A DNA stretch of 64,000 nt from Lepidodermella squamata (Eukaryota; Animalia; Gastrotricha): positions 2,108,001 through 2,172,000 of the forward strand of contig JBLDXI010000010.1 of NCBI GenBank assembly GCA_047495785.1, given 5' to 3'. The first letter of the stretch is position 1, and every line of letters starts with the position of its first letter. The notes below the pieces were generated by a model, which searched no databases, was not told where the DNA came from, and saw nothing but the letters and a program-made list of their open reading frames with translations. Shown piece by piece: positions 2 through 64,000 of this stretch. Both the position numbers and the translations under genes were made by a program.

Positions 2-202
2 GGCTCTGAGATTCCGTTTCATTTCATCAGTTCGCGGGCTATTGATGAAATCGTCAAAGGCGTTGATGCTAGCCAACGCAAATGGCCGCCGTTGGATGAG
101 GAGAAGCTGGTGAAGACGTTGTACGAAGGGCTCAAGAGAGACGGGGCTTTGAGAAGTATTGAAAACTTCAGTCTTCCTCGGCTTCTTGCTCCGGAAAACT
201 AA
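2..202 (+). CDS. IRG-like GTPase type A, 3' end only (copy A0, cut by window start)
   Basis: Reads GSEIPFHFISSRAIDEIVKG...LPRLLAPEN*; nearly identical to the 3' end and 3' UTR of the gene at 10944-11921. Confidence 0.85.
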   Translation, partial: GSEIPFHFISSRAIDEIVKGVDASQRKWPPLDEEKLVKTLYEGLKRDGALRSIENFSLPRLLAPEN

Positions 203-997
203 TTCAAGCGATTGACTTGTGACTTTGAAGGTCATGTTATGAGACCTATTGATTCATTTTTCGTTTCATTACTTGGGCGTTTCTGTTCACTTTAATCTTG
301 AATGTTTCAATAAAAATTGCAAGTCTGTCTCATTCTGATTTGTCTTTCTTTAATCAATCTGGCAGATGGAGTCTTGAAAGTAAATTGAACACCTTTTGGC
401 AGTTAGACGTTGTGAAAATTACCAGAATTTTATTAGATATTAATAGAATGATGAGAAATTCAGTTAATATTCAGTTGGCCATGTTTGAGGTTTTTGAAGT
501 GCAAATCGCGTATCGTTTTACGACTAATTTCACGAATACTTTAGAAAATTGACTCAGAACTTGGCATAAAAGATAGCAGCTAGTACTAAGCCTCAACTAA
601 ACAGTAGAATTTCTGCGCTGATTGGGCAATCGATCGCTGAAGAACAGCTGCTTCAAAATACAAACTTTCAATTAAAGCGCTTCGGACCCGCGAAGATCAA
701 CAAAGATCCGCACGATGGCATACTCGATGCAGCAGGTGCTTGAAAACTACAGCTGTTCATCTCTGTTTAAGTTATTGATACAAATTTTAAACAACCGGCT
801 TCATTCCACAGGGTTTATTCCTTCATTTTTTGGACAATCATAGCTTCAAGAAAAGGAAAACCATCACGTTCAATATCAATGAACTGACGTTGGCAGTTGG
901 CACCGTAATTTCATACCCAAAAGTCAACGCAGAACTGGCTTGGAAGATGAGCTATTTCAAAGCAGGGGCTAAGCAGACGAGTTGATAAGAATCACTC

Positions 998-1892
998 TTA
1001 CATCTTACATGCTGATGCTGACGCGGACAGATCGAACTCATCGATGGAGACTTCTCTGTTCCTGAGAGCTCCCTCGACCAGAGTCTGTAGGAACAACTGC
1101 TCGTCGATGATCGGGTACTGCGGATCGGCTGTGGTTTCGAAATCCATCATTCGCCTCAACGCGCGGCCGCTGAGGTAGTAGAACTTCACCGAGCACAGTC
1201 CGTTCTCGAAAAGCTGGCCATCGTAGCCAGATTTTACTCGATGCACGACATCATTCACTAAGCGCTGGCGAGTTTGTTCGTCAAGGTCGGACAATTTCTT
1301 CCCATCATATTTGTCGAAAGCTTCATTATCAAAATCGATGTCAGATTTTGTTACGACATATATGTATTCCTGGCCCATTTTCTTAGCCTGAAGGCCGTAA
1401 TCGATATCGAACTGTGTCAGCCGGTTGCCAGTCACGATGATCAAAGTCCATGAAGTAATAGCTATCTGGGTAAGGCGCTGGCTTTATTGTGCATTCGACA
1501 ACGCTCACGTTAGACTTTGCGCCTCGAACCAGCGCATTGATAAGGGACGACTTGCCAACGCCGGCTTGCCCGATGATTGCAAAGTTGAAGTCGTCGAGAT
1601 TTAGGCGGACATCTTTCGACTTATGCTTGATTTCCGCCTCCATTCGCTTGCGCTTCGCCTCTTTCTCAGCTTCGATGCGTTGCTTTTCTTCGAGCATCTT
1701 TCGCTTCACAGCTTTGCCGGTTTCAAGTGCCATGTTGTTTTGCAGTTGGGATATTTGGGCTTGGAGTGTTTCAAGTATTTTCTAGTAACAAAGGTCACAA
1801 TAATTTGGAAGAAATTCTTGACATCATACCGAAATCTCCGGCGGGATTTGATATTCACTGACTTGACGGCGGCTTCCGAAAATATTACCCAT
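998..1892 (-). pseudogene. Chimeric IRG-like pseudogene: type A 5' half joined to type B 3' half
   Basis: Exon 1 1892-1830 (MGNIFGSRRQVSEYQIPPEIS), 48 nt GT-AG intron, exon 2 from 1781 with A-type G1 GQAGVGKS. Switches near 1460 to B-type YFMD..IIVTGNRLTQFDIDYGLQAKKMGQE. The G3 (DxPG) segment is missing and there is a frameshift near 1445. Confidence 0.8.
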
Positions 1893-9459: not shown

Positions 9460-10290
9460 CTAAATGATTCTGGGCTTCTGTTCTATGAAGACCGCTCGAT
9501 TCTGGCGAGCTCCCTCGACCAGAGACTGCAGGAACGCCTGTTCATCGATCAGCGGATACCTCGGCACGGATCCAGCTTCGAAATCCAACATTTGTTGCAA
9601 CACATGGCCGCTGAGGTAGTAGAACTTCGCCGAGCCAAGTCCATTCTCACCGAGCAAGCGTTCGTGATCAGTTTTAACAAGTTGTGCGACATCATTCTTC
9701 AAACGCAGGCGGGTTGGTTCGTCAAGTTCGGAAAACTTCTTCCCACCATGTTTTTCGTACGCCTCGTTGTCAAGTCGGTATCAGACTTCGAGCGAACGAA
9801 AATGCACTCCTGGCCCATTTTCTTAGCCTGGAGTCCGTATTCAATATCGAATTGCGTCAGACGGTCCTTGGTAACAACGATCAACGCGTCCATGAAGTAC
9901 AGGAAATTGTCGAGGTAGTACTTGCCAACTGGATGCTTCGGGGTCATGGCTCCAGGGTGGTCCCAGAAAACCTTGCGCCGAAGCTCCTCCTGTGCGAGTT
10001 TTCGCTCAACTTCCAAAGCAGCTAGCTTCTTCTGTTTCTCCTCTTGAAGCTTCTTCGCAACTTCCTCATCTGTCGACACCTGCAACTTCAACTGCAGTTG
10101 ATTCAATTGTTGCCGCATTTCCATGAGTAGCGGCGTCATATCCTGTACATTTACACATCGAAACATTTGCTTGCGGAAAAAAAAGAATAAGACTTGCCAC
10201 AACTTGAACTGGGGCTTGAGATTCCGACTTGGGCGCAAACAAGCTGCATATTTCCTTCACCACCATTGCCGGGACGATAAATTCCGCCAT
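9460..10290 (-). pseudogene. IRG-like GTPase type B pseudogene (B1)
   Basis: Exon 1 10290-10198 (MAEFIVPAMVVKEICSLFAPKSESQAPVQVV) with GC donor. Exon 2 has an in-frame 57-codon deletion removing G1 and switch I (LRRK|VFWDHPG), a 1-nt frameshift near 9770 and a truncated C-terminus. Confidence 0.8.
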
Positions 10291-10943: not shown

Positions 10944-11921
10944 ATGGGTAATCGCGAAAGCACACATGTCGAGTATCGAATCCCGGCAGAATTTTGGGTA
11001 TGCTTCCCAATGCTTTCTTTACAATTGCCTTACTTTTTATACTAGGAATTGCTGCAAAAGCAGCAAGCTGTATTAACGCAACTGCAAACCAACATCACAC
11101 AAGAAATCGACAAAGCTAAGAAGCAAGCGCTGATCGAAGAAAAGCAACGCCTCGAGGCCGAGAAAGAGGCGAAGCGTAAGCGAATGGAGGAGGAAATCAA
11201 GCGAAAAGCGAGAATCTTTGGCATCAATCTCGACGACTTCAACTTTGCAATCATCGGAACAACCGGCGTTGGCAAGTCGACCCTAATCAACGCGTTGGTT
11301 CCGGGCGCGAAGGCTCACGTGAGCGTCGTCGAAGGCACAATGCGACCGACACCTTACCGCAGCCGCAACGTCGTGCTTTGGGACGTTCCTGGTTCGGCGA
11401 CAAAGAAACATCCGGTTGCCAATTACTACGCTGACAACTTTCTGTACCTGATGGATTCGCTGATCATTGTGACTGGCTTTCGTTTGTCCGAATTCGATGT
11501 TGAGTTTGCGAAAGAAGCGATCCGACATGGCCAGAGGGTTGTTTTCGTGAGATCGAAGGCTGATGTGGATCTAGCCAATGATTACTACGTCAAGGAGGAG
11601 AAATATTGGGAAGACTGCCCGGCCAACGACCGAAAACGTGTAGCCGACGCCGTGAGCAGTGAAATTCGAGACAACTACACACGCCAATTTCAGGAATTTG
11701 GCGTTGCGAATATGCAGGATGGCTCTGAGATTCCGTTTCATTTCATCAGTTCGCGGGCTATTGATGAAATCGTCAAAGGCGTTGATTCTAGCCGACGCAA
11801 ATGGCCGCCGTTGGATGAGGAGAAGCTGGTGAAGACGTTGTACGAAGGGCTCAAGAGAGACGGTGCTTTGAGAAGTATTGAAAACTTCAGTCTTCCTCGG
11901 CTTCTTGCTCCGGAAAACTAA
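10944..11921 (+). CDS. IRG-like GTPase type A (A1), 2 exons: 10944-10997, 11046-11921
   Basis: MGNRES start (N-myristoylation consensus MGxxxS); coiled coil; G1 GTTGVGKS, VVEGT, G3 WDVPG, G4 RSKAD; motif order and spacing match IIGP1/Irga6 (VVEVTM..HPY, FWDLPG, FVRTKVD); 48 nt phase-0 GT-AG intron. Confidence 0.88.
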
Positions 11922-14721: not shown

Positions 14722-16569
14722 GGTTTGGGTCGCTAAAGAGGCCGATCAAAATAGCATGCCGAGAATTCCTGAAATCCCTTACTTTGGATAAGCAAGATGT
14801 TGAAAATGGGAAATTTGTGCTCTGCTTAAATTTTCAGATGACGGCTTCTTGGCATTGCTTGTAAATATATGTAATGTGGTGAAAAAATGTATTTATTTCA
14901 CCTTTTTTCCAGGGATGATGATCTTGGCCAGCTTTGGTTGAAAATGTTTTACATGCGTCGGAAATGACAATCGTCGAACTTTCTGATTTGAAAATTGACC
15001 CTGTTTCAAACTTGTTTCTTGTTTCAAAGTTTCAATAAAATTCCTGTTCATCAGTTATCTTCATTGCTGGCATATTTTTTTAGAATGGAGAATTCAGTTT
15101 TTTTATACCAGCGAGGAAGATTTTACCGATATTTTTATAATATCGAAAAAATAAGAATATTTTTATTCTGTCCTTTTTGCGATGTGCTCTTCCAGCTCCG
15201 CGTGCTTGAAGAGCATGTGGTGCGAAAATGCCGATTAGGGATCACTCTTACTCGAGCAGAGCGTGAGCATGCTTTCCGCCAATCGATACCAATTGATCCT
15301 GAGCAGGGCTGGACTTGAAGCTTTAATTTCTGACAGCCAGTTTCGTGATTGACGATGAACGCGTTCTATGTTTAATGTTGTAATCGGAATAATCGACTTC
15401 GTGTTTACGTTTTACTTTAATCTCGAATGATTTCTATAATCCTCGTCAAATTAAGTAATAGTAATTATAAATAAAACTACCGAGATCTATTCTTCATAAG
15501 ATGTGTTATAATCAAGAAAGACATTTCAGACGACACAAAATCTTAAACTTAACATTTATCTTGCATCGAATGGGCTCAAAATGGCTGCTGAAATTATTGC
15601 ATTTTCACTGAAGTCAGCTATAGTTATTCACAAAAGTAACGTGATTGAAAATTTAAATTTATCTTCGCCTACAATCAATAATTAAACCGGAATTGCCAGA
15701 TTTTTTTTTTCACGCAGTTTAGTTCGAAAATTTTGCTGTCATTGTCGAAATTACATAAAATAATTTTCCGCAATCAAATCCGGCAAAATTTAATGAGACG
15801 CTAAGCCTGAACAATATTACGTATTACATCGGCCCTTTTAGTTTACTTTTAAATTTCACTTTTATATACTTCTTTTTACTTTTTAAATTTTAAATTTTTG
15901 AAGAACATATAATTGCTGGAAACAGGCTATAATATATGGCATTGTTGAGGAAAGAAGTGAAAAATATGGTGAAAAGTAAAACAACACGTTAAGTTTTTAA
16001 TTTTTTGAATGATATAATGAACTAAAAAGTCAAACTATAAATTGATAAGGCTTTACTTTATTTTATCAAAACTTCATGTTATTGGCCTCATAAAACAGGA
16101 TTAAAACTGATAAAATGAATTAAAACAAAAGTATGAGATATGTGGAAAAATTATTCGGAATCTGTATCAGTGTCGATGAGTATTCTCCATTCCGCGTTGA
16201 TTTTGTCCATCACCGCGGTCTTGGAGCGAGATCCGAAAACAGCCATAAAATCAGGGTCTTGAGCGGCTTTATAGCTCTTGATGTGCGGGCTATATTCGAT
16301 TGTTTCGGGAAAATTGTTTTCTTGCCCGAAATCGAGGAGGGCTCTGATACTTTCCTTCTCCGGGGTGTCGTAATATTACAGCTATAAATATTACTTTTTC
16401 ACCACTAGCATCCATATAATTGAAGCCGTAAACTTCAATTAATAACCAGCTAAATAACCAGCTAAAGAGCTCATTTTTTCAAACCGGATTTTTTCGAGAA
16501 TAATTGCAGGACAGAATCAGTTCGGACAGGAAATGTGTAGAAGCAGGAGAGTCAACAGAGTTTAAGACT

Positions 16570-17182
16570 GGCACGCGAATTTTTCATTTTTTACTGTTTT
16601 ATCTCACATTTTTCATCAACTTTACAACTCACATATTTTTCAATTTTTTAATTTATAAAATGCTCATCCGAATGACCGTCGTCGAGGGCGAAGGGTGGCA
16701 CAAAATTGTTGTCAGCGAAATTCCATCTTTCGACGAGCTACGGTTCTGCGCGATGGAGGAACTTCTTCGCGCAGCTTGCGTCATTGGTGATTTGGAGATC
16801 GTAAAAGCGCTTCTTACTATGCATCAATCGAATGAATTCAAAAGTTGGAAACAAAAGGACAACCAGGAATCAGCACTTGTCTACGCAGTCCTGCACTCCA
16901 ACGTGGAAATTGCAACTTATCTAGTGGAGCAGCTCCATGGTGTTGACTTCAACAAGGTCATCTTTCTGCGAATGAAGTTCCTCCATCGCGCAGAACCGTA
17001 GCTCGTCGAAAGATGGAATTTCGCTGACAACAATTTTGTGCCACCCTTCGCCCTCGACGACGGTCATTCGGATGAGCATTTTATAAATTTAAAAAATTAA
17101 TTAAAAAATTGAAAAATATGTGAGTTGAAAAGTTGATGAAAAATGTGAGATAAAACAGTAAAAAATGAAAAATTCGCGTGCC
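16570..17182 (+). repeat. ~200 bp-arm inverted repeat enclosing an ankyrin-repeat gene fragment
   Basis: Arms 16570-16765 and 16974-17182 are near-perfect reverse complements; the loop encodes LLRAACVIGDLEIVKALL...ESALVYAVLHSNVEIATYLVEQLHGVDFN. Confidence 0.8.
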
Positions 17183-18154: not shown

Positions 18155-19027
18155 ATGGAGCGTCAACATCAGCACTTGAATGCAGGTATGCTTAGCCAGC
18201 TTTTCAGCTTGATGCAGGCTAGCGGTTCCGGTATAAATCTGTCTGGCTCGCATGGAGTGTTTCCGACCATCAGCTCTGTTTTCGACCAACCATCGTCCAG
18301 TGGGCTGAGTCATTTTGCCGCGCCCTCGGTTTCGCAAGTGCCAGCAGCTCAGCAGCCAGCAGCAGCTCCGGCGGCTAACAACGCTGACGATGCAAGCGAG
18401 GATATGGCCCTGTGGAATGAGCCGAAAATCAGGTCCCTGTTGGCTAACTGGGCGTTGAATAAGGCTAAGTTTGAGAACAAAGCCCTCCGCCATAACAAAA
18501 TTTGGGGAAACATTGCAAAGGCCGTTAATCAAGACTGTCCGACGCCGCCCGCTGTGAACGGCGAGCAATGCCGCTTAAAACACCGCGACTTGAAGCGGAA
18601 ATACACGGAGACGAAGGTGAAACCGCCATCTGGTTCAGGTACCGCCGAAGTTGTTGACTGGAGCCGAAAGATTCCATATTACGATGCCTTGGTCACAGCT
18701 TTCGAAGGCGACCCCTCGGTTAACCCGCTGATTACGATTAGCACCATCGACGGCGTGAAGAAACCTGAGGAAAAGTCCAAGGTGGAAAAAGCAGAGGCTA
18801 AGAAAACGGCGAAAAAACGTGGTGCTGATGTTGCAAATGAAACTAAAGAGGAGCTGCGAGCTTTGTTCGAGGAGTCGATGTCACTTGAGCGGAAAAAGCT
18901 ACGAATCCTGGACCGAATTGCGACTGCGGCAGAGCGTCGAAGTGGCCTGAAAGAGGTCAGAAAACCGGTGAAAAATGAGCCAATTGATAATGATGTCTCA
19001 ATCTCGTCTTCGTCTGAAGACGAATAG
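18155..19027 (+). CDS. Myb/SANT-like (trihelix/MADF-type) DNA-binding protein of Harbinger 1
   Basis: WNEPKIRSLLANW...KIWGNIAKAV...GEQCRLKHRDLKRKY...PYYDAL trihelix pattern, C-terminal coiled coil, 290 aa ORF. Confidence 0.8.
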   Translation: MERQHQHLNAGMLSQLFSLMQASGSGINLSGSHGVFPTISSVFDQPSSSGLSHFAAPSVSQVPAAQQPAAAPAANNADDASEDMALWNEPKIRSLLANWALNKAKFENKALRHNKIWGNIAKAVNQDCPTPPAVNGEQCRLKHRDLKRKYTETKVKPPSGSGTAEVVDWSRKIPYYDALVTAFEGDPSVNPLITISTIDGVKKPEEKSKVEKAEAKKTAKKRGADVANETKEELRALFEESMSLERKKLRILDRIATAAERRSGLKEVRKPVKNEPIDNDVSISSSSEDE

Positions 19028-19237
19028 ACAATGTGATAGAATGTGATTGAAGAGGAGTGAATAAATACCGTAAACTGGATCTTTAATATAGCCGATAAAT
19101 AAATGAGAAATAATTGATTGTGGCTATGATAACGCGTGATTTTTAATTTCGTAATCTCACTCTTAATTTTTTTTAACAAAATATTAAAAATATAGATATA
19201 TACTGGCTAGCTATTTGGTATTTGCCGCTACTGACCG

Positions 19238-20597
19238 ATGGACGAAACCGATAATTTTTTCGACGAAGTGGGTGATATTGCTGCAATCTATGCCTTGGAT
19301 AATTCCTTCACGATGATGATAACACTCTTATCTATGGCTATTATTGGTCTCAACTGCCGTAATAGATGGAGAGTTCGACACGCTAGAGTATCGAATTTTT
19401 TCGATGTGACTGTACCAGCTTATACCGACGACGACTTTCAGCGACATTTTCGCCTCACACGCGCCTCGGCCGAAAATTTGACTGAATTTTTAGTTCAGCG
19501 TGGCGCATTGCAGCCGAAAAATAGTTTCAGCATTGGCCACCCTCCAATCGACCCTTATATGAAGGTGCTTGTAACTTTGAAATATCTAGGAACGAGCGAG
19601 AGCCTGTTCTCTATTGGGAATCTATTCGGGATTACAACGTCGACGGTGTTCAACATTGTCAGGCAGGTTTGCCATGGAATCGTCGACAATCAGCGACACT
19701 TTATAAGGTGGCCTAGTGATCTGGAAGCAGTGCAGCTGGCTCAGAAATCCCTGGACAGCTACGGGTTCCCAGGTGGCATTGGCGCAATTGACGGCACCCA
19801 CATACCAATAATGGCACCAAACGACAACCCGGAGTCCTACCACAACTACAAGCGCTTCTATTCGATTATCTTACAAGTTTGTCACTGAACCTATACACTT
19901 TTACTGGTTTTAGAGTGCCTAAATTATGAAAAATGTTGCTATAACAGTGAGATCAATTGTCAATTGTCCCCTATATTTGGATTAGGCGGTTGCTGATGTC
20001 AATGGTCGCTTCATCGATGTTTTCTGCGGCATCCCCGGTCGGTCCAACGATCGAGGTGTTTTCAACCGAAGCCCGTTGTTACGATCGATAACTGAGAACA
20101 AACCGGCGTACTTTTCCAGTCCGAATTTTCACATTTTGGGTGACGGGGCCTATCCGCTGCTCGATTGGTTAATGATTGGCTACTCGGCGCAGGAGATAGC
20201 GACAGAAAATCCAGAAGGTGTTGAACGCTGCGAGTTGTTTAATACTACTTTGTCATCAGCTCGACAGGCTGTTGAACGGGCATTTGGCATGTTAAAGGGA
20301 CGATTCAGGCGATTTATGACAAGAGCTAACAACTTTGACGTTGTAGAAATGTCATATTTTGTTGTTGCCGCCTGTTGCCTTCATAATTACTGCCTAGCCG
20401 ACGGTCTCGGTGCCGCTTTTCTGCAGGAAATCCAAGCCGCCGAAGAAGCCGATGAAGAGGCTGTCGATCATCCCGGAGAGGTTCAAGCTGTTGGAAATCC
20501 CATGGAGGTGGAAAACGATGTACAGAACAATAATTTGTTGGGTGAAAATAAGCGTTTCCAAATCACGGAATATTTGTTTCACAACAGAAATATTTGA
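19238..20597 (+). CDS. HARBI1-like DDE transposase of Harbinger 1, exons 19238-19876 and 19986-20597 (~416 aa, apparently intact)
   Basis: FQRHFRL, GAIDGTHI, SIILQ|AVAD...PGRSND, LGDGAYP, RQAVERAFGMLKGRFR, CCLHN; phase-0 GT-AG intron. Confidence 0.88.
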
Positions 20598-22577: not shown

Positions 22578-22619
22578 GTCCTGTCCGTCCAAGCTGAGCC
22601 ACTAAAAGCTTTTGGGCTT

Positions 22620-23570
22620 CTGTTAGCGAATTTGCTACAATTTGAACATTGAATGGCTACGGTTTAACGGCTTGGAACCAGCTTGAAATGAACTATCCAC
22701 TGGCGCTGTACAAAATCGAAACAATCCAGGAGGCTTGATTTTAGCGCTGGAACCTCTGAAACCAGCTTTAGTGGTGCAGGTAATTATAGACCCATTCATT
22801 TTTGCAAAATCGAAGCTTCGAATCGAATTTCCCATTCCTTATCGAAGTTTTACCAAGGGTATCACCGGAGGAATGTGAAATTTACCAGAGAAATTCCGGA
22901 GAAGTCCGATGGTAATTATTTGTTAATCATCGGTAATTTACCTGGTTGGAACGAATATCTGCAGAATTATTTTTTATGAAAAATTCGAAGATCCAAGATC
23001 ATAATGTATATTCATAGAACGGATATTTTCTCCTGCTTTGGGGTGTAAAATTGCATATAATACTTGGAAAAATCCTACTTTCCAGTGCCCAACATTGGGA
23101 GGGATCGAGTACGAGGATAAGAAAATGAGAAATGAGAAAATGATCCAATTTCGGCAATTCAATACTTTCCTCAGGTCAGGGTTAAAAATGATTCCAACCA
23201 GTGTGCGAAGTAGGATCCGGGAGCTGATGTGTTTTCGAGCATCCAGCCGAACAAACCAAAGGATCCCCCCTGTGGTTTTTTCAGCCTTCCTCTGGCCCGG
23301 ATCCCTGATTCCAACTTCGGATATTTATAAATCGGATATTTTTAGCAAAGTCTATTGTGTTGAGCCCAGCCAACTGTATCACAGTTCGCAAAGCACAAGT
23401 TCGGATAGTCATCGAAAGTTCAACTCGGGCCAGCTTATGATATTCGAAGACTCAAAAAGCTCTGATGATCATCAACATTTTTACTTCAAAGTGATCAAAG
23501 TGCAAAAGATGAGAAAACACTTTCAAGTTGCTATAGACTTGAAACTGAAGCTAGAATAATGGAATTGGGA
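22620..23570 (+). repeat. Duplicated 3'-flank block of type B genes; homologous to ~62747-63597
   Basis: Collinear similarity, e.g. gaaatgaactatccactgg, ttaccagagaaattccggag, gaaactgaagctagaataatggaattggga. Confidence 0.75.
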
Positions 23571-25522: not shown

Positions 25523-26494
25523 ATGGGTCCCCGCCATAGCACTGTGTATCGAACCCCGCCAGAAGTTTTCGTAAGCTTCCCAATGCTTTCTTTACATTTG
25601 CCTTACTTTTTATACTAGGAATTGCTTCGAGAGCAGCAAGCTGCAATGAAGCAACTACAAACCAACATCACACAAGAAATCGACAAAGCTAAGAAGCAAG
25701 CGCTGATCGAAGAAAAGCAACGCCTCGAGGCCGAGAAAGAGGCGAAGCGCAAGCGAATGGAGGAGGAAATCAAGCGAAAAGCGAGAATCTTTGGCATCAA
25801 TCTCGACGACTTCAACTTTGCAATCATCGGAACAACCGGCGTTGGCAAGTCGACTCTCATCAACGCGTTGGTTCCGGGCGCGAATGCTCTCGTGAGCGTC
25901 GTCGAAGGCACAATGCAACCAGCACCTTATCGCAGCCGCAACGTCGTGTTATGGGACGTTCCTGGTTCGGCAACACAAAGGCATCCGGTCGCGAATTACT
26001 ACGCTGACAACTTTCTGTACCTGATGGATTCGCTGATCATTGTGACTGGCATTCGTTTGTCCCAATTCGACGTTGAGTTTGCGAAAGAAGCGATTCGATA
26101 TGACCAAAGTGTTGTTTTCGTGAGATCGAAGGCTGATGTGGATCTTGCCAATTATTACTACGTCAAGGAGAAGAAATATTGGGAAGACTGCCCGGCCAAC
26201 GACCGAAGACATGTAGCCGACGCCGTGAGCAGTGAAATTAAGAAGAACTACACAGGCCAATTTCAGGAATATGGCGTTGCGAATATGCGGGATGGCTCTG
26301 AGATTCCGTTTCATTTCATCAGTTCGCGGACTGTTGATGAAATCGTCAATGGCGTTGAAGCTACCCGACGCAAATGGCCGCCGTTGGATGAGGAGAAGCT
26401 GGTGATGGAGTTGTACGAACGGCTCAAGAGAGACGGTGCTTTGCAAAGTATTGAAAACTTCATTCTTCCCCGGTTTCTTGCTCCGGAAAACTAA
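25523..26494 (+). CDS. IRG-like GTPase type A (A2), exons 25523-25570, 25619-26494
   Basis: MGPRHSTVYRTPPEVF exon 1; all G motifs intact; close paralog of A1. Confidence 0.88.
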
Positions 26495-29257: not shown

Positions 29258-30350
29258 TCAGTCTTTTTTGGGCGGGATTAACTGGGCGCCAAGTTCGCGG
29301 AACATTTTGAGCTTTTCCTCGTGGCGGCGATTTTTATCCTCGCGGCTAAGCCGCATATTTTCATTGATCGCCTCGGCGATTAGCGACGAAACTGAAGGTC
29401 GCTTGAGCTTGTCGACCTTGGGTGTATCAGGGCCAGATGAGCTCACCGAGCTAGCAACGCTATCGCATCGTACCGGTTCAGCTTTCTGAAAACAGCAAAA
29501 ATCAGTAAGTAATATTTTCAATAAATTTCGAAGAATTTGACGATTAATTTGATGAAAATTAACTAACCTTTTCGATTTTGGCTTGGAAACCAGCACTGAT
29601 AACGACTTCGGGATCCAGCTCCTTATCACCCATGACGCGCTGGAACCACTCCATGTTCGCCATCTTCTTGGTCTTCGTGCCGCTAGTGTGTCGATTGTGG
29701 TCACGGACCACTCGATAACGTGACATCAAGTTGCGAAATTTTCCTGCTACGTCGGCGCCGGTAGTTTTCAGTCCATAGTTCAGGTTGAGGCCATCCGAAA
29801 TCAGCTTGTAACCGGCGTTCGGGTTCTTCAGCTTGCCGCTGAACTTGCCCAAATTATCTTCGTAAAGGCCGAGTAAGGCCTTCGTGACTTCCTCCCGCTG
29901 TCTCTTCGTCGATCCAAATAAAAAGAGTGACGTAACAGCTGTCGCCTCGACTTCTTCTTCGGTTTCGACCTCGGTATCGGTAGTGTCACCTTCGGTTCGC
30001 TGGCGGGTAGTTTTCGGCTTTTTTGACTTCGATGCTTTGGCGCGTCGTTTCGGCTTTGCTTCGGTGGCGGCTACGGCTGGCTGAGGCTGAAGCTCAGGTT
30101 GTAGCAATCTCGGCGTTTGAGACTGCTGAGTTGCAGGTTGCGGCGGTAAGAATTGGTAAGAATTCGGGACTTGCGAATGCGAAGCACCATGTTGGAAAAA
30201 ATCGGCTGGCGGCAAGTTTTGGTATAAACCCGCCGAATACATTGAAGGGAAAGGTGATTGATGATTCAGAGAAGATGCCATCATGCCAAGCGTACGAAAA
30301 ATAGCTGCCAATTCCTCAGGCGTTAATTTGGCCAAAATTGAATGATTCAT
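29258..30350 (-). CDS. Myb/SANT-like accessory protein of Harbinger 2, exons 30350-29568, 29485-29258
   Basis: TKALLGLYEDN...YKLISDGL...VAGKFRNLMSRY...WFQRVM, C-terminal coiled coil RRHEEKLKMFREL; phase-0 GT-AG intron. Confidence 0.72.
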
Positions 30351-31876
30351 ATCAAAAGCAAATTGCAATCAAATTCGGCAATGAAAGTGCAATTATTCGT
30401 CGTCAAACCTTACCTGAACTTTCGCGCCTTTTCAAATTATTAACGCTTGATCAACTTCATGGTCGGGCGGTGTAATTTTACCATTTTACCCCTTTTCTTT
30501 CTCTTCAATTACCTCGGTATAGGCGGTTCCGCCAAGGGTTCCGCTCGGCTTTTGCGCACTGCTGTGAGCGCTTAGATGAGTGCGCGGTGATAAGGCGCGT
30601 CGTACGCGCGCGCTCGTACGCCCCCCTAGGCGTACGACGAAAACTGCATCGTACGTACAACTTTTCCGTCGTACGTACGACGCACATACGACGCGCTGAA
30701 ATACAGAATACGACGAAAAGTGTGCGCGCATCATCGTACGTACAACACATGAAAAACACGGGCACACTCGCCCAAGTCGTGCGCACTGTTATTTATCGCT
30801 AATTTTACCGCGCGCGCAGTTGTCAAAGAGTAACTTAAACTTTTTGTGGCGGCTTTTATGCCAGAATGAAGAGAATTTAATCCCCTATCGATTGAATATA
30901 GGGTTCTCGCTCGAAAAACTGAAAGGGAAAAAGTTTTACGTGCACTGAAAAATTAGGGCGGGTGACCTCACGCGAGCGCACCACCAAGTAAAAATTGTGC
31001 ACGTCAAATGTTTAATTCCCAAATTTCAATCGTAACAAATCTATATTCAATCGATAGAGAATTCAATTTACTTCAATTCGATGTAAAAGCCGACGTGAAA
31101 TTCATAGATTGCCTTTTGATTTCAGTTCAAAATGAGCTGACCAATAGGAGCGCGCGCAGAGCCGTAACGTAGGCGGGCCTGAAAATGTGCTTTTCATGGA
31201 GTTAATGCCTCGCACTATGTAGTCGGGCCACGTTTCCTTCGAGTTTCCCTTAAGCTGTATATGCAAACAAGATAAAGAGGGATTAAGGTGAACAGCTAAT
31301 TTAAACTAGCGCACGCATTTCCAGGTGGCGTCAAGGTTGTTGGCATAAGACCCTCTCTACAATTTAGGTCCTCCCTTTAATTATTTCAAATGCCTCGCAA
31401 CCCTCTCTACTAAATAGGTCCTCCCTTCTAATTAGGTCCACACTTATAATTCGGTATTTACGGTATAATACAATAATATTAGTTTTATTTAGCCTCTTCT
31501 AGGACCCGAACATTCCCACCATTTAACGATGATATAAAGAAAAAACATAGACAACTCGATACAGATCGGAAAGTAACGATCTTCCTATAGTAAATTAATT
31601 TCACACCAAAACGTGAAAAAGTGGGCACGCGACCTTTATTTTCATTCACTCATCGCCCCATCCGCCCATTGTAATTTTTTCGATTTTTAATTATTTTCAA
31701 AAATTCTCAGAGAAAACGTTTCATTTCCCAAAAATTCCAAACAAATTTTCCGGAATACTAGAAGCGCTCCTCTATCGAATGAGTCCTGTTTCATGAGACG
31801 GTTTTTTCAATTGTCTCAAAGTTGGTCACTTTTACCTTTACGAAAAATCGCCATTTTAAGAGCCTTTCCGGGCGGT

Positions 31877-49175: not shown

Positions 49176-51422
49176 ATGGCTGCCTGTGGAAATAAGCAGT
49201 GGAAGTTTTCTTCAATTTATGAGTTCAAAGAGGAGAAGGCATTAGGAAAAGGCGCTTTCGGCTCAACTACGCTATGCCGTCGAAGGAATGACGTAGCTTT
49301 ATACGCTGTCAAGGCAGTCGACCTCACCAAAATTCGAAATGCTCACCCGGAGAAGCCACGTCTTGCCGAAAGACTAGTGGAGCTGAGCGAGGAAGAGGTT
49401 AATTGTCTTCTCATTTTTTAATAGTTACACGATCTACATTCCTTTTCCCGCGTTTTTATAGCATGAAAAACTGGCTAAATTGTCTCACCCAAATATAGTA
49501 TCTGTTTACGGAGCATTTACGGGTAATTTTTCTAATACGTATCGCCTGTAATATATGTGAATATTTATTGACAGAAAATGGAAAGAAATTCACCACAGAG
49601 ACAGGAATATACGAGTCACTGATGTATTACCTTGTCATGGAATACTGCTCGGGCGGGGACTTGGATGGTTACATGAAGAAAGCAACGGGTCCCATTCGCG
49701 AAAGTTTGTTGTTGAAATGGGCGCGGCAACTTGCTTCTGCGGTTGCTACGCTGCACGAAAATCGAGCTCTCCATCGAGATATAAAGCCGAAAAACATTTT
49801 CCTGCAAAAGGGTGACATAAAACTTGGGGACTTTGGTTTGGCGAAGATTTATGACGAGTAAGAATACACTATTCCTTTGCTCAATTCAGTTTGTTAACAA
49901 CGCCTTGCAGCTCTTCAAGCAGCACCCAGCAATCCGTGTACAGCTCCAGGGTTGGTACCGTGCTCTATATGGCGCCTGAATTATTTGGTAAGGAGAAGCA
50001 CTCACACGAGAGCGATTGGTGGGCTGTGGGGGTAACTTTATTCGAGTTGGCTAATTTCTATTTGCCGGTTAGTTTTTGCACGGCTAAAACTTGATCTTAC
50101 CGTTATGTAAATTTTTCAGTTCGATTCAATACTGGATATCACATCGTAAGTTGTAACGACCAGGCAAGCTTTGCGTAATATCAAATTGATACATTTTCAG
50201 AAAAGATCCGAAAAGTTTTGACGCTTCGCGCAACTATTCGCCCGCATTTCTGAACACCATTTTGGACATCATTTCTGCGAAGGATGCATCTAAACGTGTC
50301 CGACCGCAAGCTTTGCTCGACGGAACGAACGGGCCGCTGCAAATTATGGATACTGATTCCGTTGCGATATCAGATCCAATTACTGCGAAAATGGTACGTT
50401 CAAATTCGGTCAAATTTTGTTTTAAGCTGGCAGTAGAATATGCTATTGAGTACCTCACTACTATTTTCGGCGAGGCCAATGCCAATGATTAATTCCATAT
50501 TTGCTTCACCTGGCCTCCTTAATTTTACTAGCATTCTTCTAAAATGTAACAGGCCCAATTAACGCTACTGCAAACCAACATCGCGTATGAAACCGACAAA
50601 GCTGTGAAGCAAAAGCTGCTCGAAGAAAAGCAGCGCATCGAAGCTGAGAAAGAGGCGAAGCGCAAGCGAATGGAGGCGGAAATCAAGCGAAAGGCGAAAG
50701 ATTGCGGTCTCGATCCCGACGACTTGAACATTGCAATCATCGGACTAGCCGGCGTTGGCAAGTCGACTCTTATCAATGCGTTGGTTCCGGGCGCGAATGC
50801 TCTCGTGAGCGTCGTCGAAGGCACAATGAAGCCAGAGCCTTACCGGAGCCGCGCTGCTAACGCGAACAGCGTCGTGTTTTGGGACGTTCCTGGATCGGGG
50901 ACGCCACGGCACCCGGTCGCAAATTATTACGCTGACAACTTTCTGAACCTGATGGATTCGTTGATCATTTTAACTGGCCAGCGCGTGTCCGAATTTGACG
51001 TTGAATTTGCGAAGGAAGCGATTCGACAAGGCCAAGTCGTTATTTTCGCGAGGTCAAAGGCTGATTTGGAACTAGCCAACTATTACGCCCATATCACGGC
51101 AAAATCTTGGGAAGAGTGCCCGGCTAACGACCGAGAACATGTAGCCGACGTTGTAAGACACAGAATTTCCACAAATTTTCTAGCCATGTTCGAAGAAGCC
51201 GGCATTGCGGGAATGAAGGATGGCTCAGAGGTTCCGTTTCATTACATCAGTTCGAGGACCGTCAAAGAAATTGTCGATGGCGTTGAAGCCAGCCGATGCA
51301 AGTGGCCGCTGATGGATGAGGAGAAGCTGCTGAAGACGTTGAACGGGTGCGTCAAGAGAGACGGTGCTTTGCGCAGTATTGACAACTTCATTCTACCTCA
51401 GCTTCTTGCTCCGAAAGACTGA
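49176..51422 (+). CDS. Predicted NEK-like Ser/Thr kinase - IRG-like GTPase fusion (~603 aa); exons 49176-49397, 49462-49522, 49575-49857, 49911-50067, 50120-50145, 50201-50393, 50553-51422
   Basis: Six GT-AG introns with compatible phases (0,1,2,0,2,0). Kinase motifs GKGAFG, AVK, HPNIV, MEYCSGGDL, HRDIKPKNIFL, DFG, APE, DWWAVG, LPF, DASKR. Last exon is a type A IRG (GLAGVGKS, DVPG, RSKAD) with no Met-Gly exon of its own. Both domains are high confidence; the joining splice is inferred. Confidence 0.7.
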
Positions 51423-52980: not shown

Positions 52981-53989
52981 TCATGCTAACGCGGGCAGCT
53001 GGAACTCGTCGATGGAGGCTCCTCTGTTGCGGCGAGTTCCATCGACCAGACACTGCAGGAACACCTGCTCGTCGATGATCGGGTACTGCTGCTCAGATGC
53101 GGCTTCGAAATCCAACATTTGCCGCAACGCGCGGCCGCTGATGTAGTGGAACCTTGCCGAGCCCAGTCCGCTGTCGAAAAGCTGGCTTTCGTAGTTGGAT
53201 TTGACTCGACGCGCGACATCATCTGTCAAACGCTGGCGGGTCGGTGCGTCGAGGTCGGAAAATTTCTTCCCGCCAAACCTCTCGTAAGCTTCGTTGTCCA
53301 GGTCGACGTCAGACTTCGAACGAACGAATATGCACTCTTGACCCATTTTCTTAGCCTGCAGACCGTATTCAATGTCGAACTGTGAGAGCCGGTTGCCAGT
53401 CACGATGATGAGCGCGTCCATGAAGTACAGGAAATTGTCCAGGTAGTACCTGCCAGCGGGATGCTTCGGGGTCATGGCTCCAGGATGGTCCCAGAAAACC
53501 AACGAAGGGTTGAAGAAGCTCACGTACTGCGACGGCTTCTCCGTCGTCTCGACCACGCCAACAGCAACATTTTGGCGAAGAAACGCGTTCAGCAGCGTTG
53601 ATTTTCCACTCCCAGGGCCACCGATAATTGCAAAGTTGAACTTGCTTGTATCGAGGTTGTGCGATTTCGCCTTCTGCCGAAGTTGCTCCTCAGTGCGCTT
53701 CCGCTCAGCCTCTCGTGCCGCAAGTTTCTCCTTTTTCTCTTGTTCAAGCCGCTGAATAACTTCCTTATCTTTCGATACGCGCATCATCAGCTGCACTTGG
53801 TCCAATTGCATCTTCATCGCCGTAAGTTCGGGCGTCGTGTCCTGTACATGAAGTCAAGTACAATCACTGGAATAGGAAACGATAAGGGCTTACCACGGCT
53901 TGAACAGGGACTTTCGATTCTGAGTGTGGCTGCAGCAGCTGCTCAAAGATTGCCAGCCCGGGGCCGGCTAAGGCTGTCGAAAAGTTCAT
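52981..53989 (-). CDS. IRG-like GTPase type B (B4), exons 53989-53894, 53841-52981 (~318 aa, intact)
   Basis: Exon 1 MNFSTALAGPGLAIFEQLLQPHSESKVPVQAV; G1 GGPGSGKS, GVVETT, DHPG, RSKSD. Confidence 0.88.
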
Positions 53990-56037
53990 TCGGTCAACTT
54001 GAGTCTAACATCATAAAATATTCATGCTATCAATATAATGATTTCACGATCGAACTAGGGAATCGGATTTGACCGAATCTTCATAGTTTGATTACGCGGA
54101 AATGCGGACTGATACAATGAATAATAATATTATTTTTCTACACAAACTCACGCCATTCGATCCAGCAACCACTCGTTCATATTCTCCTCGCTTCTGCCCT
54201 AATACGGCTGCCAGTGTTTCATTGGAGTCCTGTATCGGAATAACAGGGGAATGCGGAGCTTCTAACAAAATTTCCCAGGATGATATGGGTTTAGATTTAA
54301 AAATAAGTTGAATACCTTGTTTCGAATTGCCATCTGTAGCCGACATGATAGAATTAAAAGGATCCATCTACAGATATCATGAACAATAGCAGATATATAC
54401 AAACCATGATCGAGAAGGATCCCGTCAGACACCATACATAGCCTCCATCACATTTCAAGCAAAGTTTTCATTGAAACATTAGAAATCATCATAAACGATG
54501 TTATAACTTGAAAAGTGTACTATTAGGAAATCTGTAAAATAAAAAAACCCGAGATGCCTCACATGGGATCTCACGAATACCTGGAATTGGACCAATGAAA
54601 ATGACACGCTCAAGTGCAAAACCAAGCACAGAATTATATGCTAATCAGTTATCCGCTGTCAATTAACAACGAAAAACACCTAGATTATGATGTATGGGCA
54701 AGCTACGACGCTACGATGTAACATCCAAAAAATGGTTGTCTGCACTTCACGTTAGGCGTTAGGACTCATCTGTACGTCACGGCGTTATTTGGGCATCACT
54801 ATTTGGGTATCACAATTTTTACCGGAAAATAAACTCGCATTTTAGGATGAAAAATCAACCCTACAACTGCTTTTATTCAGAGGGAATTTACTCTGCAAAA
54901 TCGAACCAAATGCCAAAAGTCACGCCCGTTTAGCTTAGATTTTGTAGCCATGGGCGCATAAAAGCTTTCTCTTTCCAATTGATATAAATTTATGGGTGTT
55001 GAATCGCCTATTCCATGCTAGCTCGTTTAAAGCATCTTAGAGTTGGTGGATTTTTCTCTGTTCGTTAATCGTGGATTCATTTTATTTAATAATTTTTTCA
55101 TATTAGCTTGATTTTTCTCATTTTTTTCTGATGCTTCATATTTTGCTGCTGCAGAAGAACAGCAGTAAAAAAGAATACACCGAAAAAATTGAGACCAACA
55201 TCGCTAGTGAAATTTCATCTCAACAAAATCAAAATTCAGAAGAAAAAAGCTTTCAAAAACTTGTTGAATTTTGTCTAAATTAGGTTGTCTTGCTTGTCTT
55301 GCTGTCTCTTTTAGAAACAATAAACTGAAAGAGACAACAAGAAATAACCCGAGTGTCCCTCCGCTAATTAGTGTTGATGAAACAATGGCAGAAAAGGGAC
55401 AACTGATTTTTTGAGGGGAGATAGGCCTGATGGTAAGCTATCAGCGCAAAAAAAATTAGGATGATTGGGCGAAAATTGATCAAGTCGTTTACTTATCTTA
55501 GAAAAAAACATATCAAAACTATTTAAGGATATTAATTTTCGCGTACACAGTACTATCCATTTCGTAAATTTAAAACATTGAACTTTGCCCCTCATTAGCC
55601 TTGAGTTTTTCGTGACCGAAAACCTCTTAATGCGGCGTCCTATATACGTCACATGAAATATACCTGCGTGTCAGATCTTTCTTATTTGTTCATCTATGGG
55701 TGCCAGCGATGCCAGTGATTATAATTATCTGGCTCGCGATTACCTCACGGCTTGAACGTTATTATTGATGGATTGTGTGAAATTTATATTTCACGCATGG
55801 CGCAGCGTCGGTTTTTTATCTTCTCATGCCTACATTTTTAATTCATTTTGGTCATTAGTTTCAACCAAAATTTAATGATTGCTTGCTTACAAAAACCAGG
55901 ATCCCCTTGTCTGCAAATTATGTTACTAAGCTAAAATATGTTAGCATTTGTTTTACTAGCAAAATTTGTACAATTTTAGCAAAGTATATTCATATCTTTA
56001 TAGTTTGAATTTGATTATTAACTCCCAGTTCATTATC

Positions 56038-57030
56038 ATGGGTGGTATTTTCGGAAAACGGCGTGCTGTCATTGAGTATCGACCCCCGCCGAACATTTCG
56101 GTATCCTGCCAATAATTTCTTTCAAACTAATGTGACTGTTGTTGCCAGATAATGCTTGAAACACTCCAATCCCAAATAGTGAAATTGCAAAACAGCATCG
56201 CGCATGAAAACGACAAAGCTGTGAAGCAAAAGCTGCTCGAAGACAAGCAACGCATCGAAGATGAGAAAGAGGCGAGGCGCAAGCGAATGGAAGCGGAAAT
56301 CAAGCAGAAGGCGAAAGATTACGGCCTAAACCTGGACAAATTCAACTTCGCCATAATCGGGAACGCCGGCGTTGGCAAGTCGTCGCTTATCAATGCGCTG
56401 GTTCCGGGCGCGAAGGCTCACGTGAGCGTTGTCGAAGGAACAATGAAGCCAACGCCTTACCCTAATAACGCGTACAACGTCATGTTCTGGGACGTGCCCG
56501 GTTCGGCAACGAAAAAGCATCCGGTCGTGAATTACTACGCTGACAACTTTCTGTATCTGATGGACGCGTTGATCATTGTGACTGGCAATCGCCTGTCTGA
56601 ATTTGATGTTTCGTTTGCAAAGGAAGCGATCCGACATGGCCAGAGAGTTGTTTTCGTGAGGTCGAAGGCTGATGTGGATCTAGCCAGCGAATACTACGAC
56701 TCGGAGAATAAGTATTGGGAGGACTGCCCAGTCAATGATCGAAGACGTGTAGCTGACAGCATCAGAAATAAAATCAAGACTAATTACAGAGACCAATTCC
56801 TGGAATACAACGTCGCGAGAATGAAGGATAGCTCAGAGGTTCCGTTTCACTTCATCAGTTCGCGAACCGTCAGAGAAATTATCGATGGCGTTGAAGCCAG
56901 CCGATGCAAATGGCCGTTGTTGGATGAGAAGGAGTTTATAAAGGGGCTGTATGAGCAGCTCAAGAAAGACGGAGCTTTTCGAAATATTGATCAATTCATT
57001 CTTCCCAAGTTTCTTGCTTCAGATAATTAA
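56038..57030 (+). CDS. IRG-like GTPase type A (A5), exons 56038-56100, 56149-57030 (intact)
   Basis: MGGIFGKRRAVIEYRPPPNIS exon 1; G1 GNAGVGKS, VVEGT, WDVPG, RSKAD; 48 nt intron. Confidence 0.88.
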
Positions 57031-60030: not shown

Positions 60031-60133
60031 CCGTACCGTGGGCCCTATTAGACATATTACTCAAGGCGGAGCGTTCACGGTTCCCGATAAAACTGCAATT
60101 TAAATAAAAAAATGTGACATGTGATTTTCTGGT

Positions 60134-60573
60134 ACGTCGCTGAGTTCAGCGGACCAAATTTTAGCGGACCAGTGTTTCGGACTAGGTCGGAGGTGTGCCA
60201 TATGATTAGTCGATTCCCCATGAAAAGTGCCATCCAATGACCTACTATGCACACCTGAGCTATTTAGCCTCACTCATGCGGTTGCAAACATCCAAGTACT
60301 ACAACTTGATTTGGTCCGCTAAATTGGGTCCGCCGAGTTCAACAAAGCCGGGGTTTTTGGAGCTCAGCGGACCCTGGTTTAGCGGACCGCTCTGTTTAAA
60401 GCAGCCCCCTATTAAGATGGAATGCTAATTTGGGTCATAATTGGTCTCATTAGATGCGCCACACCTTGCCGCACTTGGCACTCAAGTGGCACACTTCGAT
60501 GGTATCCATGACTAGGATATAAGGGGTAATAAGTGTGGTCCGCCAAGAAATGGTCCGTTGAGCTCAACGACGT
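60134..60573. mobile_element. Mutator-like MITE
   Basis: TIR acgtcg.tgag.tca.cggacca; 9-bp TSD ttttctggt at 60125-60133 and 60574-60582. Confidence 0.8.
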
Positions 60574-60639
60574 TTTTCTGGTGTGAAATGCGACTTTACA
60601 AAATCAACCTTAAAACTGTATGTATGATGAAAACGGCAT

Positions 60640-60935
60640 TGTTGTTCATGAAACGTAACGCATTTATTCCAACGTTTCGGTTATAGGTACTCGATAACCA
60701 TCTTCAGGAATTAGTTGAGAAATTAAATCGAAATTTGAAGTTAAAATAATAATTAAGGTTGATGTAGAACATTTTCAAATTATGATACGAATAACTATTC
60801 ATCTTCTTCTTCCACTTCTCATGGAATATCGGCTCCGTAAATTACTTAGCTGCGATCGAGTCGTTTTGTTTGTTGAGATTGGGCTTTGAATGTAGAGCAT
60901 TTCGAGAATAAGGCAATCCCATTTAGTTTGTATGG
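60640..60935 (-). mobile_element. Penelope-like retroelement 3' remnant
   Basis: WDCLILEMLYIQ / KPNLNKQNDSIAAK* resembles the GIY-YIG C-terminus of Penelope-like ORFs; followed by a hammerhead-like motif and AATAAA. Confidence 0.6.
60666..60711 (-). ncRNA. Minimal type I hammerhead ribozyme-like motif
   Basis: auuc-CUGAAGA-u-gguuau[cgaguaccu]auaacc-GAAA-cg-UU-ggaau: conserved core, 6 bp stem II, palindromic AACGUU stem III. Confidence 0.5.
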
Positions 60936-63708
60936 GAAAATCAATTTATAATCAAATTATTTATTTTTAAATATATTGAATATTATAAATAATAAATATA
61001 CTGAATCACCTTCATCCGTTTGATTTTCTAACGGCAGTGCTAAATTACTTTGAAATGTATTGAATGCTCATGAATCAACCTTGGAATTAGCATGGAATTA
61101 GCATAGCGGAATTAGGCATTGAATATTTTATCAAGATATTCCTCTCGGCAAGACCAGTGTATGAAATATTCGCAGCGCAGGAGTTTCAGCCCCCGTTAAT
61201 TTTTTCAATTTTTTCCAGTTTAAAAAACACGACATTTTTTTGAAAATAGTATATGTTTCGTATAACTACTTGTTCATAATGTGCGAAATCTCGCTAAAAG
61301 AAACCAGATATTGCAGAAATTACCGAGGAATCATGATATGATCAATGATGTCTCCTAGTCACATGAATCGGTAAGATGTTTCGACGACAAGTAGTCCAAT
61401 CAAGGCATTTTACGATTTTCCAAAAAATACGGAAAATTTATTACCTTTCTTTTGCTTATGATCACTTTTTATTCGCATATTTTGCATAAAATGAGAAGTT
61501 GCTTGAGTTAAAATATGCTGAAACCATAGCAGGCGGCCGATAGTAAAAGGTTCAAATTTATTTTACGAGTAATTCCCAATGAAATAGCAGGCCAAAGTAA
61601 AAGAGCATTATTTTACGAGTAAATTTTTTTGTGAACGAAACGCAACATACGAACAAATACGAAATAGCCGTACTGTATTTATTATTTATCTATGGAATCC
61701 CCCAAAATAAAATGGGCATAAAGAATAACGAATAATAATAGCTATTTACGACTTGTGTTGTAACAATTTACGGCATTCAGCGTGTCCCATAAGTAACGCG
61801 AGAGAAGAAAATACACCAGAAAGACTTCGGAAAATCTTAGATGAGAGACCAAGTCACATCTCAAGGCCAGAAAATTTTTTGAAAAATTCTAAAAATCACG
61901 AAAATAGATATCAAGTATGGCACTTGTTAATGGAAGTCCGGAGAAATTTGTTCCATGCGGGTAAAATACCGTATTTTATCGAATAGTATCCAACCTCAAA
62001 TAATAGCCACATTCCATATAGTAATATCAATGGGTCTAGTATGATCAGCTCATATAGAAAGAATGGGGGAGGTGACTAGCGTGCCAGAAGAAAATTGAGA
62101 CGTAGAGGAGAGAAAGTGCGACAACGAGGAAGATAACTACATCGCATTGATGTTGTTTAAATGTTAATTATCAAAGCGGTTCCAGAGTGGTACCGATAAG
62201 TGGCGCCCATTAGCCGTTTGTCTCAAATAAATTGTTACATGCGTCCGTTGATGAAATTCTTGAAATAGGCTTCACCTAGTTTCAATTTTGACCCCGATGA
62301 TGAGAATATTAACACAGATGAATTATAAAAAAAAATTTAGATAGTAATTTTGGGAGCGTCGTTTCACTTTGAAACTTGGTAGATTGATGATAAATTACCT
62401 GCGTAGAGGAACCATAGTTAATACTCAATTTCCTAATTATAGTTCCGAAGTATGAAATCTGATTGGTTGATTCAAAAGGCACTCGACACGCGCTATGTTT
62501 GTGAGCCCAACGCTTATCAGCATAAGCTTTTCGCGCAGAAATTGAATGAATAAACATGAGAACTGAGAGTCCGATGAGATTGAAAATATTCATAAAAAAT
62601 ATTTGAAAGGTTCAAAATTGGGCCTGCGGTTAGGGGCGCTACTCGAAGAGATCGACCTTCTAGTATCAATTGATTCCGAAAATAAACCGTAAATGTTGAA
62701 TAGCAAGCCGGGCTTATAAATTTTGAACCCATAAAAATTCTGCTACTGTTAGCAAATTCGCTACTATTTCAGCATTTAAGGTATAATGGCTACGGTGTAA
62801 ACGGCTGGGACCAGGTTGAAATGAACTATCCACTGGAGCTGTACAAAATCGGAACAACCCAGGACGCTTGATTTTAGCGCTGGAACCTCTGGAACCAGCT
62901 TTAGTTGTGCCAGTAATTATAGATTATTTGCAAAATCGAACCTACGAATCGTATTTCCCATTCCTTATCGAGGTTTCAGGTTTCATCAAGCTTTGCACCA
63001 AGGGTTTCACCGGAGGAATGTGAATAAATTTACCAGAGAAATTCCGGAGAGGTCCGATGGTAATTATTTGTTAATTATCGGTAATTTACCCGGTTGGACC
63101 GAATATCTGCGGAATTATTGTTTATGAAACGTTCCAAGAGTGATCATACTGTTTATTTCCTGGAATCGAAATTTTCTCCTGCTGTGAGATGGAACATTGC
63201 ATACCAATACCGGGAAAAATCCTATTTTTCAGTGCCCGAAATGGGGAAGGAGCACCTGTTGGAGGATGAGGATATAAGAAAAAAAGAAATAAGAATTTCG
63301 GCAATTTCGGCAATTCAAAACTATTCTCTGCTCAGGGTTAAAAATGATTCCAACTTCGAAAATTAATAAATCGGATATTTTTAGCAAAATCTATTGTGAT
63401 GAGCCCAGCCAACCTGTAAAACAGTTCGCAACGCACAAGTTCGGATAGTCATGGAAATGTCAACTCGGGCCAGGTAAGAGTAAAAATGCTCTGATGATCG
63501 TTCATTTTTACTTCAAAGTGATCCAAGTGCGAAAGATAAGAAAACACTTTCAAGTTACTATAGACTTGAAACTGAAGCTAGAATAATGGAATTGGGAAAG
63601 TCAACACGACTAAATCGCTGAATCTCAACACAAAAGGATTTGGAAGTTGAACAATTTTAAAGTGAGAGTTCGGACAGAATCGAATTGAGGGTGTCTTCAT
63701 TCCTTGAA

Positions 63709-64000
63709 TCACTCTTCAGTCTTTATGCCGGAGAGCGGCAGCTCGAACTCATCGATGGAGACCCCTCGATTCTGGCGAGCTCCCTCGACCAGAGACTGCA
63801 GGAATGCCTGTTCATCGATCATCGGATACCTCGGCACGGATCCAGCTTCGAAATCCAACATTTGTTGCAACACATGGCCACTGAGGTAGTAAAACTTGGC
63901 CGAGCCAAGTCCATTCTCACGGAGCAGGCGTTCGTGGTCAGTTTTAACTAGATGTGCGACATCATTCTTCAAACGCAGGCAAGTTGGTTCATCAAGTTCG
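63709..64000 (-). CDS. IRG-like GTPase type B, 3' part (B5, cut by window end)
   Basis: ELDEPTCLRLKNDVAHLVKTDHERLL...DEFELPLSGIKTEE*; close to the B1 C-terminus. Confidence 0.8.
   Translation of the reverse strand, partial: ELDEPTCLRLKNDVAHLVKTDHERLLRENGLGSAKFYYLSGHVLQQMLDFEAGSVPRYPMIDEQAFLQSLVEGARQNRGVSIDEFELPLSGIKTEE

Follow-up and report, generated by a model that had tools for sequence, protein, structure and literature searches.

To our knowledge, IRG proteins have been studied almost solely in mice and fish. The founding survey of the family found no clear IRG homologue outside vertebrates (PMC1297648). In mouse Irga6, four residues, Glu106, Thr108, Arg159 and Asp164, are needed for oligomerisation and GTP hydrolysis, the GMS regulators carry Arg, Gln and His in place of Glu106, Arg159 and Asp164, respectively, and the heteromeric contacts of mouse IRGs use the same face of the G domain (PMC3042988). 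We analyzed a 64-kb stretch (G000:C10:2108001-2172000; hereafter the window) of the 121-Mb, 151-contig genome of the gastrotrich Lepidodermella squamata, in which an earlier note had described an array of IRG-like GTPase genes of two sequence types, A and B, organised as divergent pairs. The array is probably a lineage-specific tandem cluster of short IRG (Pfam IIGP) GTPase genes, shaped by birth-and-death evolution in a transposon-rich region.

The assignment to an IRG-like family made in the earlier note held. Exon 2 sequences were used as the queries for the searches and the fold comparison, while exons 1 and 2 were joined for the frame check and the residue count. Pfam IIGP (PF05049) matched with 72-81 bits against a cut-off of 24 (E-values of 1e-20 to 1e-22), far above the next-best GTPase profile, MMR_HSR1 (29-39 bits; E-values of 1e-7 to 1e-9), and no non-IRG family fitted better. 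The match was limited to positions 29-186 of the 375 in the IIGP profile. By sequence, the top matches in PDB were Irgb6, Irga6, GM4951 and Irgb10 (phmmer; E-values of about 1e-14), with EngA and Era at about 1e-4. The AlphaFold models of two intact copies, termed A5 (predicted local distance difference test score, pLDDT, of 83) and B4 (pLDDT of 86), both with a predicted template modelling score of 0.80, comprised two long N-terminal helices, predicted at residues 2-18 and 22-57, and then the G domain. All of the top 30 matches in Foldseek were IRGs with the mouse proteins leading, so that mouse IRGs were the nearest PDB entries by both sequence and fold. The best fold match was Irga6 (VIA-align; Z of 19.8, root-mean-square deviation of 2.7 Å over 180 residues, 29% identity). 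Model residues 62-276 superposed on Irga6 residues 68-257 only and the protein stops about 16 residues further on, in agreement with the earlier description of a C-terminal region much shorter than that of Irga6. Membership did not extend to the flanking helical domains (Irga6 residues 1-67 and 258-413), of which the C-terminal one is absent. These results support that the proteins belong to the IIGP/IRG family by the G domain only, as a short variant without the C-terminal helical domain.

The alignment identified E95, T97, R147 and D152 of A5 as the equivalents of Irga6 Glu106, Thr108, Arg159 and Asp164, and the four residues were invariant in all of the 21 intact A and B copies. The surviving P-loops of the array, GxxGVGKS(S/T) in A and GGxGxGKST in B, were all of the GKS type with no GMS among them, as had been noted previously. 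Neither A nor B bore the GMS-type substitutions at the three interface positions or in the P-loops. Because the interface residues are kept and the GMS replacements are absent, we regard A and B both as effector-type and neither as regulator-like; as judged from the alignment, the effector-type catalytic interface is kept in both types.

A profile search of 1.84 billion representatives recovered 3172 relatives, 55 of them with E-values of 1e-30 or below, and the named ones included proteins of the tardigrade Hypsibius, basidiomycete and mucoromycete fungi, and vertebrates (IRGs). In the FastTree phylogeny of G domains, A and B formed one clade with a Shimodaira-Hasegawa-like support of 96, and neither any of the 150 best database representatives nor the other paralogues in the genome fell within it. 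Thus, the split between A and B is lineage-specific. In the same tree the short forms grouped with fungal and tardigrade proteins, and A and B shared a large branch with these short 'interferon-inducible GTPase-domain-containing proteins', which are known from fungi, tardigrades and uncultured eukaryotes. The likeness extends to the short architecture and a conserved Asp-Glu motif near the C-terminus, and a Met-Gly start is seen in several of the outside proteins as well (P0002 of Hypsibius, P0027 and probably P0003). A feature search of a protein atlas placed a cluster of Basidiomycota nearest and a mostly rotifer cluster second-nearest, and the atlas clusters of proteins of 233-296 amino acids (aa) were of Basidiomycota, Ascomycota and Rotifera. 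Many of the database relatives contain 2-4 G domains per protein. The closest named relative is a 532-aa protein of Hypsibius exemplaris with two IIGP domains (MTYJ01000104.1), the gene of which is flanked by an IIGP gene of 281 aa in the same orientation. In contrast to this locus, which comprises one two-domain gene and one same-strand neighbour only, L. squamata has an A/B split and a 22-copy array that were not seen elsewhere. As for pairing in other species, the contigs of the closest relatives were either short (P0003 and P0007) or single-gene (P0049 and P0081), and the searches yielded no close relative together with its genomic context. No match was obtained by a word-based protein search with A5, a metagenome scan with the A+B alignment gave distant matches only (26-58% identity over short stretches) and no usable locus, and no description of invertebrate short IRG arrays was found in the limited set of literature searched.

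Compared with the mouse GKS IRGs (Irga6/IIGP1, Irgb6, Irgb10 and GM4951), the proteins of the array share the IRG-type G domain (26-31% identity and the best fold match), the GKS P-loop and the equivalents of the four Irga6 residues named above. The genes are likewise clustered, tandemly duplicated and nearly intronless, and the Met-Gly start of the A type resembles that of myristoylated Irga6. Unlike the mouse proteins of about 415 aa, those of the array are only about 310 aa long, lack the counterpart of the C-terminal helical domain, bear a long, charged helical stretch in place of the N-terminal three-helix part, and have no GMS-type partner in the array. The same genome also possesses three IIGP genes of canonical length, encoding 427 aa (L013:2007-3287, contig C21), 432 aa (L016:1789-3084, contig C17) and 416 aa (L017:1924-3171, contig C10 at 1.16 Mb), all of which reach into the helical-domain part of the IIGP profile. 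The 427-aa protein matched profile positions 5-305 with 249 bits and grouped with the vertebrate-type long IRGs.

The loci were found by tblastn with one A protein and one B protein as queries. There were 12 IRG-like loci in the window and 22 copies over 97 kb once its flanks were included, and a second cluster of 6 copies was found on contig C48. Genome-wide, at least 44 IIGP matches were detected, and all of the A and B copies were confined to the two clusters. The two types, about 40% identical to each other, formed two well-supported clades in the tree (97/99 and 98/100). Of the earlier description of about 13 copies in two types, the two types thus stood but the count came down to 12. A copy comprises a short exon 1, one phase-0 GT-AG intron of 48-52 nucleotides (nt) and an exon 2 of 285-293 codons; introns of the genome are about 48 nt long. 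The predicted proteins are 307-318 aa in the joined-exon gene models, close to the 310-320 aa estimated before. The copies in the window, together with one neighbouring kinase gene, are as follows.

2-199, plus strand: 3' fragment of an A-type copy (tblastn match to A residues 227-292), from a frameshifted copy with its start about 770 bases before the window
1016-1892, minus strand: dead A/B chimera, with an A-type Met-Gly exon 1 and N-terminal half joined to a B-type C-terminal half
9478-10290, minus strand: B1, pseudogene; about 57 residues including the P-loop deleted, frameshift after SKSDTDL, exon-1 donor changed from GT to GC
10944-11921, plus strand: A1, intact, 309 aa; exon 1 at 10944-10997, 48-nt intron, exon 2 at 11046-11921; IIGP 76.7 bits
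22287-24330, minus strand: B2, pseudogene; exon 1 frameshifted, donor changed from GT to GC, insertion of about 1 kb at 22578-23557
25523-26494, plus strand: A2, intact, 307 aa; exon 1 at 25523-25570, 48-nt intron, exon 2 at 25619-26494
32454-33466, minus strand: B3, intact, about 318 aa; IIGP 74.8 bits
46646-47607, minus strand: A3, damaged; frameshift after residue 244 of exon 2, product cut to 283 aa
49176-50492, plus strand: Ser/Thr protein kinase gene, multi-exon and complete; exon matches to Pkinase profile positions 1-42, 70-148 and 149-198
50553-51422, plus strand: A4, exon-2 frame of 290 codons; A-type exon 1 lost, in-frame TAA at 50547-50549
52981-53989, minus strand: B4, intact, 318 aa; exon 1 at 53989-53894, 52-nt intron, exon 2 at 53841-52981; IIGP 71.7 bits
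56038-57030, plus strand: A5, intact, about 314 aa; exon 1 at 56038-56100, 48-nt intron, exon 2 at 56149-57030; IIGP 81 bits
63727-64000, minus strand: B5, 3' part; the frame runs 566 bases past the window end and a TACA repeat stands in place of the 5' end

Five copies of the window, A1, A2, A5, B3 and B4, are clearly intact, and A4 and B5 retain open frames with the 5' ends lost. Of the 12 loci, no more than 6-7 appear to be functional. The A-type fragment at 2-199 is dead and continues a copy in which the frame is broken 184 bases ahead of the window. The two pieces of B2 recovered by tblastn correspond to B residues 1-208 (24181-23558) and 189-285 (22577-22287). In the chimera, identity to A is 71% in the N-terminal part and identity to B is 69% in the C-terminal part, the two parts are out of frame with each other and no G3 region is left; this copy shows that recombination takes place between the two types. 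The orientations given in the earlier note, head-to-head as well as tail-to-tail, were reproduced, and the ATGs of exon 1 fell exactly at 10290/10944 (B1/A1), 24330/25523 (B2/A2) and 53989/56038 (B4/A5), as did the starts at 47607/49176 for A3 and the kinase gene ahead of A4.

N-terminal myristoylation is a feature of Irga6 but not of every IRG. All of the 12 first exons of the A type start with Met-Gly (e.g., MGGIFGK, MGNREST and MGNLFGR), and by our reading 11 agree with the usual N-myristoylation pattern, as opposed to none of the B copies, in which a different, hydrophobic first exon of 32 residues is found. The Met-Gly start of the A type thus makes a candidate site for myristoylation, by analogy to Irga6, and the difference between A and B in this respect is newly found here. 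The likeliest scenario is that an ancestral lipid anchor was retained by A and replaced in B. Whether a lipid anchor is present or not offers a simple, testable handle on the two types.

The upstream regions bear splice-site-like elements. A conserved block lies upstream of B4 (54003-54350, minus strand) and also of the copies B-6806, B-9688 of C48 and B-72898, and ends in a GTGAGT/GTAAGT donor about 150-250 bases before the start codon. Where the 5' region is intact, most copies of both types have an acceptor of the TTTAG/TATAG type 15-40 bases ahead of the start codon. The upstream donor and acceptor together suggest that the copies have an intron in the 5' untranslated region or undergo trans-splicing, and the promoters would hence lie further out.

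The most striking claim of the earlier note was that A and B are partners comparable to paired NLRs. Head-to-head pairs of plant NLRs are exemplified by RGA4/RGA5 and RRS1/RPS4, and the array resembles them in having divergent pairs of two related types in a defence-like family. If A and B were co-regulated and mutually dependent through shared divergent promoters, as sensor and helper or as effector and regulator in the manner of paired NLRs or GKS/GMS IRGs, the seven B/A head-to-head pairs across the two clusters, the purifying selection on both types (median ratio of nonsynonymous to synonymous substitution rates, dN/dS, of 0.30 for A and 0.21 for B) and the N-termini suggestive of a division of labour would all be in keeping, as would the conservation of the G-domain face that mediates the heteromeric contacts of mouse IRGs (PMC3042988). 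Nevertheless, the seven B/A pairs were accompanied by two B/B pairs (70151/72898; 9688/11088 on C48) and two A/A pairs among the 11 head-to-head junctions of both clusters, and seven or more A/B junctions arose in 23% of the trials when the labels were shuffled (p = 0.23). A block of 4.4 kb comprising B, spacer and A is duplicated at 87% identity, with smaller blocks at 86-97%, and the trees indicated co-duplication: the clade of A1, A2, A-66052 and A-668 pairs with that of B1, B2, B5 and Bf-1426, and the clade of A5 and A-4466 with that of B4 and B-6806. The seven B/A pairs would thereby reduce to about three independent origins by en bloc copying.

The close relatives of A5 and B4 on C48 are tail-to-tail, and the tardigrade Hypsibius, the nearest named relative with genomic context, has its two genes on the same strand without any divergent pair. 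In the lineage of B1, B2, B5 and Bf-1426, none of the four B copies is complete (B1, B2 and Bf-1426 are dead and B5 is 5'-truncated), whereas three of the four A copies are intact: A1 and A2 stand beside dead B1 and B2, and A-66052 beside the truncated B5. The decay of B beside intact A argues against dependence on the neighbouring partner, and sets the array apart from the plant NLR pairs, as does the lack of an integrated decoy, barring a real fusion between the kinase and A4. Furthermore, the start codons of a pair are 0.65 to 2 kb apart, with conservation of the spacer restricted to the parts close to each gene, and neither type bears the GMS-type substitutions. Altogether, the NLR-like pairing is not supported and is in part contradicted, and we regard a co-regulated, mutually dependent partnership of A and B as distinctly unlikely. 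Instead, A and B may have arisen as head-to-head paralogues by an inverted duplication, and the resulting unit would then have been copied repeatedly, in whole or in part. Such repeated copying would explain why orientations alternate and B/A pairs recur, with no need for functional coupling.

Could the genes have spread as the cargo of a transposon, or serve a role other than immunity? Many transposon remnants lie within the array, yet no terminal inverted repeats were found around the 4.4-kb unit, the only long inverted repeats being the A and B coding sequences themselves, and the copies sit in two clusters rather than being dispersed; it is exceedingly improbable that the B/A unit spread by transposition. 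Alternatively, the proteins may be GTPases of membranes or organelles that do housekeeping or metabolic work, for example at lipid droplets or in vesicle traffic, and the genes may have been multiplied for the sake of dosage or to serve particular tissues. That dN/dS stays well below 1 throughout, with no 25-codon sliding window above 1 in A or B and no hypervariable surface patch, is in line with such a role. So is the case of mouse GM4951, one of the best fold matches, which reportedly works on lipid droplets (PMC12749288). On the other hand, about half of the copies in the window are broken, a chimera is present and the genes form a large, lineage-specific family (at least 44 IIGP matches), and rapid gene birth and death is commoner in defence families, which is an argument by analogy only. 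We thus consider a non-immune role unlikely, and prefer the lineage-specific, birth-and-death cluster of short IRG genes.

Several points weigh against the preferred reading. The defence role would follow from homology alone, and, as mouse GM4951 illustrates, a member of the IRG family can work in lipid metabolism instead of defence. The gap in fold Z was modest (16-20 for IRGs against about 15 for mitofusin and EngB), and the family call is therefore based on the profile match and sequence identity. A2 bears Pro after Gly2, and the myristoylation is read from the sequence only. Finally, the deepest nodes in the trees of A and B were unresolved, and a single ancestral pair is the simplest reading only.

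By homology to Irga6, A and B may both be active GTPases of the effector type, which would dimerise or oligomerise through the nucleotide-bound face of the G domain and stimulate each other's GTP hydrolysis. The A type would be anchored to membranes by N-myristoylation of its conserved Met-Gly start, and the B type, with a hydrophobic 32-residue peptide in place of that exon, probably has another targeting. By analogy, the likeliest function would be cell-autonomous defence on membranes. This invertebrate possesses at least 44 IIGP-type matches, including three genes of canonical length and a large family composed of helices plus a G domain, and the reduced family still keeps the residues needed for self-activation of the Irga6 type. 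If the defence role is true, the proteins would reveal the smallest core with which an IRG can work, and the IRG system would be older than interferon.

The kinase gene precedes A4 by 60 bases and has the same orientation. Between a strong donor at 50394 (GTACGT) and an acceptor at 50552, a 159-nt intron would join the kinase and A4 in frame, and A4 is thus possibly spliced to the kinase. The dN/dS of A4 against the other A copies was 0.41-0.47. The kinase family has at least 150 copies in the genome and, among the matches listed, no other copy adjoins an IIGP locus. A bolder scheme, in which myristoylated A and differently targeted B would co-assemble through their G-domain faces as a minimal IRG defence of membranes, with the A4-kinase fusion as a bait or regulator that echoes the kinase-IRG conflict between Toxoplasma and the mouse, strikes us as quite improbable.

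Other elements were observed between the copies. A part of the insertion in B2 (22616-23198) shares 79.5% identity with a segment close to B5 (62742-63354) and is thus a repeated element. A remnant of a Harbinger-type transposon, comprising a Myb/SANT-like open reading frame and pieces of a DDE_Tnp_4 transposase, was found at 18155-20597 (plus strand), and a further Myb/SANT-like frame at 29559-30368 (minus strand). An ankyrin-repeat open reading frame is located at 16504-16998 (plus strand).

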